From Macrostomum lignano (taxonomy: Eukaryota): a DNA stretch of 64,000 bases. The position numbers and the translations under genes were made by a program. The notes under the pieces were generated by a model. That model ran no database searches and was not told the origin of the DNA. It saw only the letters and a program-made list of their open reading frames with translations. The DNA lies in NCBI GenBank assembly GCA_002269645.1, contig NIVC01000064.1:586942-650941 (forward strand), read 5' to 3'. This document shows, piece after piece, positions 25,201 to 31,200 of this stretch (positions within the stretch are counted from its first letter, which is position 1; each line of letters begins with the position of its first letter).

Positions 25201-28200
25201 ACCGCCGTAACAACGATGTACCGCACCGTACTCGGGATAAGACTAGTCGTGAAAATGTTAAACCTCGCCGCAACCGCAACAAACCTCGCAGGATTAAGAA
25301 TCGCAACGTCGAGACGTGATTCTCGACGAAATAAGGATGGCCCTTATGCTCCTGTTACTAAGGCTCTACCGACTAGTGCAGCCTAAAGTCTCACCCAGTC
25401 AAGAAACTCTTAAGGTCTGTCCATCACTTGGACAACTGGCGTATGTGCCGAAAAGTGTTCACAAGAAAGCCGAGCAGAAAGAAACGCTCATCCGAACAGC
25501 TATGCCGACCGATGGACCATTCAACGCGTTAAAGAAAACGCGGCGACCTGGAAAAGCAGAAAGCAAGATGCAATGGAGAGCCACTACGAGCTTTGCATGC
25601 TAAAAACTGCGTACGAGCTACAGTACAAGAGGCCACACCATCAACGTCGATCAAGTCACCCTGAAGGCAGGCTGGCAGGTGGGCTACCGCTGGGCTTCGA
25701 AAGACCAGGGGAAGCGGTTCAACATTTCACTGCAGGACACGGGTGAGCTTTTCTGTGAAAGTACTTCTATTATTGCAGGGCCACCAAGCACACTTAAAAA
25801 CACCGTTGTGACAGACTTGCAGTCTAATACCTAGCGGTTCAATGGGAACTGTACTCATGCTAGCAATCAGATAACACAACAGATGGGCCACTGCAGCCTT
25901 GCTGCAGACGCCAAAGTGTCCTTGGATTCAATGAGGAACCAAGAATACTTAGGCACAGAGAAATAACTGCGAGTGACAATTCACCATCTTCGTCCACCGC
26001 AGCGCTACCACTATGTCTAAAATCATGGTCAAGGTGTTAGATGGATGCAAAAACGATTTTAAACTTGTAATTATCGAAGCTACGCACATTAAATTTACAC
26101 AAGCTTAGTTGAAAAGAGCAGCTTGATAGCTAGCAGTGGAGTGTAAAACCAACTCAGAGTGCTGTAAGTTGGCAATGAGGATGACTCTCTCTCTCTCTCA
26201 GTTGGCTTTAAACATATTTTCGCGTTCCTTTTTATACGAGCTACGAGCTACATTAAGTATAAAAGTATAAAACAGGGTCAGACTGCCTGTCTTCAAGAGC
26301 TTGGCACGGAAGACAGACCCCCCCCCCTGTGCAGAGAGTTGCAGGATCGGGCTGTCTGTGGTCGGGAGCTTGATACGGGGATGATCTGCAATCAGACATC
26401 CCCACCTGCTACCGACAGCACCAAAGCAGATGCCAGCCAAGACAGTGTTCAATCACTGATCTACATGCCACCCTCGATGCACATACGGTTCACCAAAGCC
26501 ATGAAAACCAATGCACGTTCAGTCGACTCCAGTCTTGAGGAAGGTCTTGAAGACTGAGTAGTCTTCGGACCAAGCAAAAATCACGCTGCTAACTACTGTA
26601 ATGATAACAACATAAAAATGTCCTAAGAAGGGTTGGAGATGAAGCCCCTAATCACAGCCAGCAACGGAGCACCCAGATACTCGTAGCCAAGTTGAAATAT
26701 GTTCTAACGTGAGATATGAAAGAGCTAATCCCATGTCGAACGTTAAGGCTGTGATCCTGTTACCATGGGACCAGGCTCTTCTAAGGCAATTTGAACAGCT
26801 TATCGACAAGCAGCTGACCACAACTATCAACCACTGTGGCAAAAGACTTTCCAAAATCGAAAGTCTACACGATAGATCAAATTAGTTGCTGCCGATGCAC
26901 CTGACAAATATCTGTGAGCAGCGGAAAACAGATACCGGTACAGCAAAGCAGATAAAATTTTGGGCTGCTGTGTCACTTCAAACAACGAAGACAAGAGGAA
27001 GAGATTACCCTAATCGATCTACTTCAAGCGCACGGATTCCCAACAATGATTGAACCCAAATTCCTTTTATCCAAAGCAGACATTCAAAGGTATGAAATCT
27101 CTGTTTCTTCGCTACTCCATCTTTGAAGATGACTTTAATCAGGCCAGCAGCAACCTAAATGTGCATTCTAAAAAAGCAGGGACATTCAATCCCTTCGATC
27201 GACATTTTTTTCTGTGGAATTTCGGCTTCCAAGACTGCGGTAGCCGAGACTGTGAGTTATGCGAGACTGTGAAAAAGGCGGAGCAATCAAGGTCAGACTC
27301 CAGCCTCACTTGAGCGATATCAGGCTCGCTAAGGACAACCGTGTTAGCAGGAATTTTTGCTCTTCCAATCACTGCTTTGGTAATTTACGCATCATGGGCC
27401 TCTGGTACCTCAGCATCGAGAATGAGACCAGCAAAGAAGCCTATCGCAAACGCAGGATCGTGGAACAGAAAATCATCTCCCCGCTGAGCACGCAGTCATC
27501 ATGCACAAGGGTTGCACACTGTATCTGCGTTCACTCGATTACACTTTTGAGAACATTTTCTGCCCCTGAAAAATTCCTGCCCTCACTGATGGCATTGATT
27601 AAGCTTTTCAGAGTGGGCGGCAATGCAGCAATACTGTGCGACGGGGCCCACCACAACTTAACACAAAATATCTAGTCCCCAACTACAGTATATTTCAGTA
27701 GATTTTCGCTTGATTTTGTTACACATGCAGAGAACCCCGACTAAGGCCAGCTCATTGCCGAAATATCGGTTCAGTACATTTATATTTTTCGTCTGTAACA
27801 GTCTTTGTGATTTTTCTCGTTTAAGTTAAGCTTAGAGCTGCTATACTGTTTGGGTGGTCTTATTTATCTATCTATCTACCATTTTTACTCAACGACGCTG
27901 TTCAGCGCACCCTTTTAAAGCTGGTATATAAATATTAAGGTTATGATAAAATAGCTTCACTGCCAATATAATTGTTGTTTTTATACCCTTAAAATAAACC
28001 ATAATGAGCATGAGCACTAGTATCTGCGGCTGACACTTCTACCTGTACGGCTCTACTACTAATAAGACTACTACTACTACTTTTCTACTACTAGTCTACT
28101 ACTGAACGGCAGTGCCCAGTTGCCTGTGACCAGGGGCTGGACGGACGGCGGTCTGTGACCAGACACCGCCAACTGCGACTCGTGGCCTGACTGGCTACTC

Positions 28201-31200
28201 AATTTAATTACTGTTATCCAGTTAAATCTAATTATTTACACTCCTTTATGAAGTCAAAGTTCTTAGTGCTCTTTATCAATTTAATATCAGTGTTTTCGAA
28301 ATAACTTTTTTGTTTTACTTTTCAAGCTGCTTAGTCATTAATTTCTTTGATTTAAACCTGTTTTTGTATAGCTCCTCACATCTATATTTTTTTGCAAGGC
28401 TTTAGTACCCCAACCAATCAGAGTGCTTCAATTTACTCTTTTTCATTTACTTTCTGTACACATTTTTACTCAAAAATGCTCAGAGCTGCCCTTCCAAGCT
28501 GGTATATCAATAATAAGGTAATGGTAAATAACTTCACTGCCAATATTTTTTGTTTTTATACCCTAAAAATAAACCCTGATGGCCTGAAGAAGGCCCGGAT
28601 CTGGCCAAAATATAGGTCGATTTAACAAATCCATAAGGGGATTCCTACTCTGTGTGCGTAGTTTTGTTTTGACATTCGTCTGTCTATCTATCTCTATCAA
28701 TCTACCGGTAGGATATACCTACCAATAGCCGCACCTGGCATAACTCTAAAAACCAGCAAACAAACCCAAAAAACGACCGACGCCAGCAAGATCGTAACCA
28801 GCCGAGTGGCCTTGGCAACAGATCCCGAAACGAATCATCTACTGGTTACGCTCGGGGCAAAAACTGACATGGGCCTAATCTTGAAAACGCCGCACTACAG
28901 ACCATAGAACCCGTGATCACGATCATCTTGAGCCTCGCCGTAACACCCGTCATGATCCACGTGATGACAACCGCCGTGGTTCCCGCAGCGACGGTTGCCG
29001 GTTTCCCCGAGGCCCTCGCGCTGACACCCGTCAAGAAGCTCACCAGCGGACTCCGATGTCGACAAAAGCCGCACGAGTTGCCCGCCTCGTTAAGCAACTC
29101 TTCCGAGCGGCGCAACACTTGGAGAACTGACGAGTTGTCCCGAGTGGGGTGCACCGCAAAACCGAACAGCTAAAAAAATTTATTCGGCCGGCCCTTCATA
29201 CCGAAGCGACGCAACAATGCGTGCATGACAACGCTTTGACATGGGAGCTGAGCGCCCAGGATACAATGGAGAACCATTATGAGCTATGCCTTTTCTGCTT
29301 GTCAGCCGAAATCGAGGATGCCAGCAAGAAGGTCGACACGAGTCAGCTGCAAACGGGCTGACGTGTTAGCTTCCGCTGGGCATTGTAAGACCTCGGCAAA
29401 CGATTCGCTTGCTATCGAGAGGTGCTACGCGCCCACTTCCGTCACATGTGGATCAAAATGGTAATCCCATATTTAGATAATACTGGTGAGCCACTTTTCG
29501 TCTGTAAAAGCGTACTAAGAATTAACCCACCGGCCTCTCCTCTCCGTATGTTTAATGAGGAACCAAGCTTGCTCAACCTCGACGGTGACGGGAGGCTGGA
29601 AGGACTCCAAACCTCCGACCGACGCAATGCAATCGTCAGAGCTAATTGTGCAGTTGCAGGGTCGAGTCGCCAGTGCTCAGGGACTCGACACAGGGGTGGT
29701 ATGCGATCAGGCATCCCCACCTGCAGGCAGCAATGGTGCTCTCAATGAACATCTATCTACTGCTGAGCCGCACACGTCCGCCATCACTATCGACGACTCA
29801 CAATCGCAGGGTAGAGTCACCAGCGCTGGACAGTATTGGCCTTGAGGACAGTGTTCACTTAACAGCAGCCTCCGACCAAGAGTCCATCCTGCAGGACCGA
29901 CCCACCTGTGCCCAGGAACCCAAAGTAGGCGCAGACTGTCCTCAGTCACCACAGGCTAGCGCGCACCCCACCAAAGCTCGTATATAAACATTAAAGTTAT
30001 GATAAAATAAGTTCACTGCCAAAATAATCGTTGTCTTTATACCCAAAAAATAAATCCTGAAGAAGGCCAGGTTCTGGCCGAAAAATCGGTCGATTTAAAT
30101 AAGTTCGATTTGACTTATCATTAAGAGAATTCGACTCTGAGTGCGTGGCTTTACTTTGGCATTCGGCTATATCTTCTCCCGCGACCAGTGATTGGTTTTC
30201 TCTCGGTGTGCCGTCTACTCACCCCGCTAAAAATTAACTCATGACCAAAATGAGCACAAGCGCTAATATTTACAGCTGATACTACTAGACGTTCGAGCCT
30301 ACTATGACTACGATTACGACGTTGAAGACTACTACTATATTCTACTACTACTACTACCACTACTGTTACTACTACTATTAATCTGCAATCGATCGGCAGT
30401 GCCCAGGGGCTGTGCAGGCGGCGGTCTGTGACCAGACGCCGACAACTGCGACTCGTGGCCTGACTGGCTACTTCAAATAACCTCTACTAGTACGACTCTA
30501 CTATGACTACGACTAGGACTACTACTACTACTGCAACTAATACAGATGATCGGCAGTGCCCAGTCGCCTGTGTCCAGGGGCTGTGCAGGCGGCGGTCTGT
30601 GACCAGACGCCGCCAACTGCGACTCGTGGCCTGACTGGCTTCTCGTTCTCAATTACTGTTGGTGTATTTGCATTTAATTATTTACAATACTTTAAGCAAT
30701 CCAAGTTCTTAGTGCTCTTTATCAATTTAAGTTGTGTTTTCGTAATAAATTTTGTCGTACTAGTCAAGATGCTTAGTCATTCACTTTTTTCTAAATCAGT
30801 TTTTCTGTAGCTCCTCACATTTATTTTCGTTATTATCCAAGGCTTTAAAGCTGCAACCAATCAGCGTGCTTCAATTCATCCTTTTTATTTTAAGTACACA
30901 TTTTACTCAACGCTGCTAAGCGCACCCCTCCAAAGCTCGTATATAAATATTAAAGTTATGATAAAATACCCCAAAAATAAACCCTGAAGAAGGCCAAATC
31001 TGGCCGAAATATCGGTCGATTTAAATACGTTCGATTTGACTAATCATTAAGAAAATCCGACTCTGAGTGCGTGGCTTTACTTCAGGTGTCCCAAATTTAT
31101 TTAGATTACTGCTGCTATTTGAAGAGTGAACTATAGCTACAGCTGTCAGCGCACCACATGCTACCATAGACAGTACCGAAGACGCACAAGAGATTTAAGT

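Follow-up and report, generated by a model that had tools for sequence, protein, structure and literature searches.

Animal genomes contain thousands of minimal hammerhead ribozymes (min-HHRs), whose role in the mobility of Penelope-like elements (PLEs) and retrozymes is unsettled. Those carried by the pseudo-long terminal repeats (pLTRs) of PLEs have one extra nucleotide separating positions 9 and 10.1, a G10.1-C11.1 pair and a palindromic 15.2-16.2/loop 3, and even dimers of the Schistosoma min-HHRs show poor cleavage (Cervera & De la Pena 2014, PMC4209133). Animal retrozymes of the non-long-terminal-repeat (non-LTR) kind are homogeneous tandem repeats of 150–450 bp, every unit of which carries a canonical hammerhead ribozyme (HHR) that includes loop 1-loop 2 contacts (Cervera & de la Pena 2020, PMC7229834), and it has been argued that they are non-autonomous PLE derivatives (Li et al. 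2026, bioRxiv 10.64898/2026.07.22.740005). Poseidon of Anolis carolinensis is autonomous and has, as is known for PLEs, its promoter in the pLTR and its HHR at the pLTR/body junction; without the element's protein, this ribozyme does not cleave (Frangieh et al. 2024, PMC11167929). Finally, animal type-I HHRs in repeated non-coding DNA are known from newt satellite 2 and Schistosoma Sm-alpha. We focus here on a stretch of 64,000 nucleotides from Macrostomum lignano (assembly GCA_002269645.1, contig NIVC01000064.1, positions 586,942 to 650,941, forward strand), hereafter the window, in which an earlier note had described a retrozyme-like array of hammerhead-bearing units. We judge it rather probable that at least six diverged, non-coding, non-autonomous retroelement copies of the PLE/animal-retrozyme lineage are piled up at this locus. 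Such Penelope-like/retrozyme elements are already known from many animal genomes, and the locus is real but ordinary.

The reading starts from two motifs on the + strand, found by direct reading and by a descriptor scan exactly where the earlier note had placed them (Table 1). They read UAAAUC-CUGAAGA-A-GGCCAG-GUU-CUGGCC-GAAA-AAUCGG-UC↓GAUUUA in the unit that we call u4, and UAAACC-CUGAAGA-A-GGCCA-AAUC-UGGCC-GAAA-UAUCGG-UC↓GAUUUA in the following unit, u5, the arrow marking a predicted cut. All 13 of the 13 invariant core positions (C3-U4-G5-A6-N7-G8-A9, G12-A13-A14, A15.1-U16.1 and H17) are present in both, at 30057–30091 and 30984–31017; every difference between the two copies lies outside the core, which is not significant at ~5% divergence. 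Stem I is UAAAUC/GAUUUA (6 bp) in u4 and is paired at five of its six positions in u5, where A:C stands at 1.2/2.2. Helix II is GGCCAG/CUGGCC (6 bp, loop GUU) in u4 and GGCCA/UGGCC (5 bp, loop AAUC) in u5; the two differing stems do both pair, as had been claimed, with the difference confined to the apex, where the sixth pair is lost without a compensatory change. In both copies, G10.1-C11.1 closes helix II and an unpaired extra A stands between A9 and G10.1, which gives the sequence CUGAAGA-A-GGCC...GGCC-GAAA, with the extra-nucleotide trait of PLE min-HHRs (PMC4209133). Helix III consists of a single A-U pair in u4, to which u5 adds U:G at 15.2/16.2. In this alignment of the motif (register A), the predicted cut follows a GUC triplet, after 30091 in u4 and after 31017 in u5.

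An RNAmotif-style descriptor (CUGANGA, 0–1 extra nucleotide, a helix II with ≥4 bp, GAAA, 2–8 nt, UH and stem I) matches these two sites only on both strands of the window, with a chance expectation per window of 0 in its strict and 0.003 in its relaxed form (300 first-order Markov randomizations). Beyond what the descriptor demands, the motif has G10.1-C11.1, the extra nucleotide at its published position and the GUC triplet; six more bare co-occurrences of CUGANGA...GAAA in the window are all without helices. Judged by their sequence, the u4 and u5 motifs are genuine minimal type-I hammerheads, far from chance. The description of them as near-canonical has to be given up, given the extra A at A9/G10.1, a helix III that is nearly absent and the lack of any Rfam hammerhead match at E≤10, and their assignment to the PLE-pLTR type stands on the extra nucleotide, G10.1-C11.1 and the long helix II (PMC4209133).

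With the pLTR ribozymes (PMC4209133) the window motifs share type-I topology, the unpaired nucleotide at A9/G10.1, G10.1-C11.1, a helix II exceeding the canonical 4 bp, a vestigial or absent helix III, many solo or mutated copies, a terminal repeat-like module beside a promoter and poor predicted stand-alone activity. They differ from them in a stem I of 6 bp instead of 4–5 bp, in a register A loop 3 (AAUCGG/UAUCGG) that is not palindromic, and in that no open reading frame (ORF) for a reverse transcriptase (RT) with GIY-YIG adjoins them. The helix III of 1–2 bp recalls newt satellite 2 and Sm-alpha; these, unlike our locus as read in register A, have a palindromic loop 3 that gives double-hammerhead dimers, loop-loop tertiary contacts and short satellite- or short interspersed nuclear element (SINE)-like units. 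Three further copies, which had been listed as decayed ones at 28570, 27731 and 24428, do exist, and two of them are not independent decays. Those at 24433 and 27737 both have CCCGAC(A/U)AA where CUGAAGA is expected and thus represent, as far as their letters tell, one older subfamily without the 5′ catalytic box; compared with the paralogous module 24806–24986, the segment that holds the latter copy is an indel of ~50 nt.

Self-comparison of the window, together with alignments, resolves the cluster into at least six diverged, head-to-tail, non-coding units of ~0.4–2.9 kb with variable 5′ sides. At the 3′ end of each unit lies a cassette of constant order. It runs from the GCGCACCCC motif and a Pol II-type TATA box TATATAAA (at 27925, 29981 and 30940, and in mutated form at 28503) through a leader no longer than ~70 nt and the hammerhead to a P module (~55–75 nt) and a CTAT-like tract, directly after which the next unit starts with unrelated sequence. 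This same cassette, ~94–96% identical if the HHR loops and a 30-nt leader deletion are left aside, is joined to two unrelated bodies: one is region I, and the other is (TAC)n/GC-rich D2/AT-rich sequence with an NF-Y-type CCAAT box 83–89 nt upstream of the TATA box. Region I of u4 is 63–75% identical to 25398–26409 in u2, and the shared stretch starts ~50 nt deeper in u2, a sign that the extent of 5′ truncation varied. Successive HHR motifs are spaced by 3304, 847, 1473 and 926 nt, and unit identity is 63–94%. Head-to-tail units, constant 3′ cassettes, variable 5′ parts and a CTAT-like tract at every junction together make up an insertion architecture of the PLE type (PMC8557442, PMC11167929); an inverted partner copy was not seen in the cluster. 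The units look as though they had been inserted one after another, each into the (CTAT)n tail of a previous one, and not like products of one rolling-circle event. Of the earlier description, the retrozyme-like array thus gives way to heterogeneous units with two unrelated bodies, and the same ~70-nt leader is not found everywhere, as that of u5 has the 30-nt deletion and a leader at 27939–28007 is followed by no HHR.

Table 1. Hammerhead copies, retroelement units and neighbouring features of the window (positions counted from its first nucleotide)
Feature	Position	Strand	Remarks
Min-HHR of u4, type I	30051–30097	+	core intact; direct reading and descriptor scan
Min-HHR of u5, type I	30978–31023	+	core intact; direct reading and descriptor scan
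Inactivated hammerhead of u3	28570–28625 (core segment 28584–28625)	+	G12 to A; 8-nt insertion AUGGCCUG before CUGA
Older hammerhead-like segment	27726–27778 (core segment 27737–27778)	+	CCCGACUAA in place of CUGAAGA
Older hammerhead-like segment of u0	24433–24474	+	CCCGACAAA; without 5′ catalytic box
Older units u0–u2	23920–27880	+	CTAT-like tracts end at ~24575, 24985 and 27880
u0	up to ~24575	+	older, diverged cassette
u1	~24576–24985	+	cassette with HHR segment deleted
u2	~24986–27880	+	older copy of region I and diverged cassette
u3	27881–28706	+	(TAC)n/D2/AT-rich body, dead HHR
u3, 5′ half			TATA box 27925–27932, leader without HHR, (TAC)n, GC-rich D2 28103–28200
u3, 3′ half			AT-rich module with CCAAT 28414–28418, mutated TATA box 28503–28510, leader, dead HHR, P, (CTAT)n
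u4	28707–30180	+	region I and cassette
u4, parts			non-coding internal region I 28707–29960; TATA box, leader, HHR; P 30092–30165; short CTAT-like tail
u4, upstream part of cassette	29961–30056	+	GCGCACCCC motif, TATA box TATATAAA 29981–29988, leader 29995–30050
u5	30181–31078, resumes at 34436	+	(TAC)n/D2/AT-rich body; cassette cut by transposon in P
u5, parts			(TAC)n, D2 modules 30376–30473 and 30547–30644, AT-rich promoter-like module, leader, HHR, P cut at 31078
u5, upstream part of cassette	30910–30983	+	TATA box 30940–30947; leader with 30-nt internal deletion; CCAAT 30857–30861, 83 nt upstream of TATA box
u5, remainder of P module	34436–34459	+	then greatly expanded (CTAT)n tail, entry to 35300
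DNA transposon, 3.36 kb	31079–34435		inside P module of u5, 61 nt after u5 ribozyme
MDH-like gene, exons	41400–41942, 40691–41215, ~35560–35920, ~35310–35450	-	homology
MDH1B-like gene, probable last exon	23735–23925	-	open frame and AG acceptor; continues alignment to oyster protein

Two features of the units may be added here. The D2 module is 98 nt long and GC-rich, its three copies are 76–91% identical with (TAC)n on their flanks, and it contains a strong hairpin, GGCGGUCUG-UGAC-CAGACGCCGCC, as well as a 27-nt block that is identical in all three (CAACTGCGACTCGTGGCCTGACTGGCT). Furthermore, 34460–35300 is a (CTAT)n stretch of ~0.85 kb, which appears to be the expanded tail of u5, the last retroelement unit, and which adjoins an exon of the malate dehydrogenase (MDH)-like gene on the opposite strand.

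That the units are non-coding, as had been proposed, agrees with all searches made. On the + strand of 28–31 kb, no ORF exceeds 113 aa, and the predicted cut sites of u4 and u5 do lie 926 nt apart with no substantial ORF (longest ≤84 aa) between them. Pfam searches of X-masked translations gave no match in the + frames of both internal regions (24480–27700 and 28630–29965) or in the - frames of 24480 to ~27900, the - strand of 28630–31080 being outside the scan. The least-interrupted frame of region I has no homologue among 5.8 billion proteins, and ARAGORN found no tRNA-like SINE head or segment. The non-coding, low-GC character of retrozymes (PMC7229834), with no LTR, primer-binding site or polypurine tract, is thus found here as well (GC content 0.42–0.54). 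In the scanned frames there is neither RT (RVT) nor GIY-YIG at E≤1, and the window holds no PLE ORF, so that a PLE partner protein is hypothetical; the sole reverse transcriptase in the window belongs to a long interspersed nuclear element (LINE; RVT_1 and RNase H, 38022–40463) that, in the self-comparison, shares no sequence with the hammerhead cassette. The units could instead be ordinary 5′-truncated, decayed copies of an autonomous PLE, with region I and the AT-rich body as its long untranslated or pLTR sequence. PLE insertions are usually 5′-truncated partial tandems that keep the pLTR and HHR (PMC8557442), and the copies are old (63–88% identity), so that a short GIY-YIG remnant could have decayed past detection. 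We nevertheless regard this as unlikely, since the up to 2.9 kb upstream of the cassette give no RT/GIY-YIG signal in the scanned frames and no homologue, and since the same cassette on two unrelated bodies is not what simple truncation would leave.

Outside the window, we compared the motif with metagenome sequences by a relaxed pattern taken from its 5′ half, CTGAAGANGGCC-N3-8-GGCCGAAA-N5-7-GTCGA. It matched 33 metagenome contigs (L001–L033; JGI contigs with the prefixes Ga0123354_, Ga0131853_ and JGI24703J35330_, and others), where ~0.1 matches are expected by chance on our own estimate, with the collection size assumed to be ~10^12 bases. The contigs carry typical min-HHRs, CUGAAGA-U-GGCCC...GGGCC-GAAACAUGUC↓GUCGAC, with palindromic ACAUGU. 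They fall into several families, in which helix II varies past a fixed GGCC clamp yet stays paired (C-G, G-C, G-U); the 3′ half of the window motif differs from their GAAACAUGUC type. Most of the contigs are probably eukaryotic DNA because they are ORF-poor and AT-rich, with 34–45% GC, the prokaryotic-looking exceptions being L015, L022 and three GC-rich contigs (L006, L016 and L027). Some hold inverted min-HHR pairs 263 nt apart, some adjoin (TC)n(TA)n, and the ORFs near the HHRs in L008 and L021 contain no Pfam domain. As only the ribozyme 5′ half and microsatellites are in common with the window, we treat the 33 contigs as comparators, not as homologues.

These contigs also served as controls for Rfam. 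No Rfam family, hammerhead or other, reached the gathering score over the whole window, and the hammerhead models (Hammerhead_1, _3, _II, HH9 and HH10), a check that the earlier note had called for, gave no match at E≤10 on 9 kb or on an 81-nt slice. The power of this check is low for the min-HHR subclass, and the negative is uninformative because the same searches, at gathering score and at E≤10, miss clear min-HHRs in the control contigs. Because this class escapes the Rfam models, ribozyme motifs that lie antisense in introns, like those here, are left without annotation; the locus opens no new question, and its practical value lies in annotation.

A number of observations weigh against placing these units in the PLE/retrozyme lineage. 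First of all, the hammerhead fold is not the most stable one: it has -10.2 kcal/mol in u4 against a minimum free energy (MFE) of -14.6, at which CUGA pairs with UCGG, and -0.9 in u5 against -12.9, where the rival hairpin GGCCGA/UCGGUC forms, so that it lies 4.4 and 12 kcal/mol, respectively, above the MFE. This rival hairpin is kept in five of five copies, and covariation over the five window copies gives no signal above shuffles in either of the registers considered below. Second, helix III has only 1–2 bp and in register A is non-palindromic (AAUCGG in u4, UAUCGG in u5), and two older copies are without the 5′ catalytic box; the core is intact in only two of at least six cassettes. Third, a strict pattern, which also requires the tail TCGATTT, has no match in the metagenome and prokaryotic genome collections, and the relaxed pattern has none in viral contigs. 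Finally, the evidence for the TATA and CCAAT boxes is limited to consensus matches, the missing PLE ORF and the missing RT and GIY-YIG signals count on the same side, and elements that depend on LINEs, too, typically end 3′ in a microsatellite.

Non-LTR retrotransposition typically leaves microsatellite tails at the 3′ end and truncations at the 5′ end, with new copies inserted into earlier tails, a pattern that our units resemble. One may thus ask whether they are LINE-dependent, SINE-like or other non-LTR elements, in which the hammerhead likeness is a by-product of the hairpin GGCCGA-AAUA-UCGGUC, for example a protein-binding site. The hairpin stands in five of five copies as against three of five for the CUGANGA box, the hammerhead fold is energetically disfavoured, and Rfam gives no match. 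The last point carries no information, as said above, and a by-product would hardly be expected to match two HHR descriptors in full (0–0.003 expected per window) and to have, in addition, G10.1-C11.1, the extra nucleotide and GUC, none of which the descriptor demands. Furthermore, the sole LINE in the window (36.6–40.5 kb) shares nothing with the cassette, and ARAGORN sees no tRNA-like part. We therefore consider a LINE-dependent origin of the units improbable.

Helix III can also be drawn in another way. Four of the five copies read GAAAUAU, in which A15.1-U-A-U16.1 can serve as a loop-less palindromic helix III (register B). The predicted cut would then follow AUC, at 30087 in u4 or 31013 in u5, 4 nt upstream of that in register A, and stem I would consist of ACC/GGU, a 2x2 internal loop and four A-U pairs. 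The register B descriptor matches u5 (0 expected by chance), the three junction-proximal pairs are kept in four to five of the five copies, and in the old copy at 27737 a 5-bp GAACC/GGUUC stem forms in register B only. Against it, of the intact pair only u5 has the palindrome AUAU, which is otherwise found in three other copies; u4 reads A-A-A-U, with A for U at 15.2. Paired cells over the five copies amount to 77% in register A and 73% in register B. In silico, the two registers are equally possible.

Could the two intact motifs act together? On this reading, u4 and u5 would be a retrozyme dimer that is still active and gives a 926-nt circular RNA: two intact cores stand in tandem and in the same orientation, with a TATA box upstream of each and no ORF between. 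Dimer rescue, which had been put forward before, has no predicted basis, as helix III is absent and, in the register then assumed, non-palindromic; it cannot be extended in a dimer, and cofolding of two 3′ halves gives a competing self-duplex of AAAUCGGUCGAUUU that buries the cleavage site, not an extended helix III. The unit is 2–5 times longer than known animal retrozymes of 150–450 bp (PMC7229834), a transposon breaks the P module of u5 61 nt past the second ribozyme, and the bodies of u4 and u5 differ, so that these two units are not products of one rolling circle. An active dimer is thus very unlikely. As to AAAUCGGUCGAUUU itself, it lies at 30088–30101 and 31014–31027, overlapping the putative cleavage site, and is a perfect 14-nt self-complement when G-U is allowed, with a second UCGAUUU 15 nt downstream; the two could serve in RNA dimerization or form an alternative hairpin that turns the ribozyme off. 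Low or conditional activity of the window motifs would agree with the literature, in which the Schistosoma and Anolis ribozymes described above do not cleave readily and cleavage failed in eight of nine dimers of Xenopus retrozymes (bioRxiv 10.64898/2026.07.22.740005).

Returning to a pile-up of non-autonomous copies of the PLE/retrozyme lineage, its working can be pictured as follows. The promoter and ribozyme of one copy would precede the body of the next, according to the pseudo-LTR logic of PLEs, so that the TATA/CCAAT module of one unit would drive transcription of the following one, starting ~30 nt downstream of the TATA box and reading through it. After that, the capped leader would be cut off by the hammerheads, which would also set unit-length RNAs of 926 or 1473 nt with 5′-OH and 2′,3′-cyclic phosphate ends; this cleavage is probably weak alone and assisted by a protein or a second copy. 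The RNA would be copied from a point in the P/(CTAT)n tail, ~85–110 nt downstream of the ribozyme, by a PLE reverse transcriptase/GIY-YIG protein from elsewhere in the genome, and new copies would favour CTAT tracts, thus building the pile-up. Circularization through the 5′-OH and 2′,3′-cyclic phosphate ends would be possible in principle, and nothing at the locus speaks for it. Cleavage, the 926-nt circle and mobilization in trans are pure inference, and the system at this locus would be mostly dead. It is also conceivable, if distinctly doubtful, that a portable cassette of promoter, minimal hammerhead and tail has been captured by at least two unrelated bodies, which would make these SINE-like parasites of PLEs with ribozyme-trimmed, possibly circular RNAs of ~0.9–1.5 kb and possibly two cut registers 4 nt apart; if true, such RNAs would be several times larger than any described animal retrozyme.

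How the locus should be classified follows from the comparison with the described systems. Like animal non-LTR retrozymes (PMC7229834; bioRxiv 10.64898/2026.07.22.740005), the units are non-coding, low in GC, arranged head-to-tail and provided with a type-I HHR; unlike the retrozymes of PMC7229834, they are structurally different from each other, ~0.4–2.9 kb long, and only two have an intact core. A classical animal retrozyme is defined by short, homogeneous units in tandem, every one of them with a canonical HHR, features that the element lacks; and as no ORF for RT and endonuclease is attached to it, it cannot be filed as a PLE pLTR proper either. Xenopus retrozymes are reported to be depleted from introns, whereas our locus is intronic. 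Poseidon (PMC11167929), on the other hand, resembles the cassette in its promoter, in the place of its HHR and in distance: its HHR cut at +26 and RT start at +111 to +118 are 85–92 nt apart, and here ~85–110 nt separate the predicted cut from the unit end. Its ribozyme, inactive alone and assisted by protein, is a further parallel, protein help being only proposed for the window. It differs in being autonomous, with an ORF that starts inside the HHR, and in an AC-rich stem-loop tail in place of (CTAT)n. The element belongs most probably with the non-autonomous PLE derivatives. The shared cassette and the PLE-like distance from ribozyme to boundary are consistent with the recent proposal that retrozymes are such derivatives, and the locus is a compact example of a single promoter-ribozyme-tail cassette on different non-coding bodies.

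The cluster is antisense to an MDH1B-like gene, as had been noted, with - strand exons on both flanks. These exons encode a divergent malate dehydrogenase of the cytosolic type (NCBIfam MalateDH-SF1/MDH_euk_cyt), whose best homologue is from the oyster Pinctada, at 40% identity. At ~35310, where one of these exons ends, there is a GT donor, and the frame with the AG acceptor on the other side continues the oyster alignment; the cluster therefore lies, by this gene model, antisense within an intron of ~11.4 kb.

The DNA transposon that interrupts u5 has 27-nt terminal inverted repeats (31079–31105/34409–34435, 1 mismatch), and a diverged duplication of ~12 nt, gtgcgtggcttt/ggtgttcggcttt, may be present at its flanks. 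Its ORF of 410 aa (31771–33003) contains DUF3504, phage-integrase (tyrosine recombinase) and QRICH1 domains and is Crypton-like; fragments of a Tc1/mariner-type transposase are found in it as well (HTH_32 at 33373–33822 and DDE_3 at 33963–34361). The LINE, a non-LTR retrotransposon at 36647–40463 on the + strand with an 813-aa ORF (RVT_1 and RNase H), lies in another intron of the MDH-like gene, and its upstream ORFs (36647–38124) have no Pfam match. The window is also unusually rich in long minisatellites, with a 22-nt unit at 22.5–23.6 kb (22470–23600), a 24-nt unit at 36.0–36.4 kb (35960–36430) and more at 17.6–18.9, 20.3–22.3, 48.5–49.9, 52.4–55.3 and 58.8–59.9 kb; several of them mimic long ORFs in all frames, and some lie in or beside exons.

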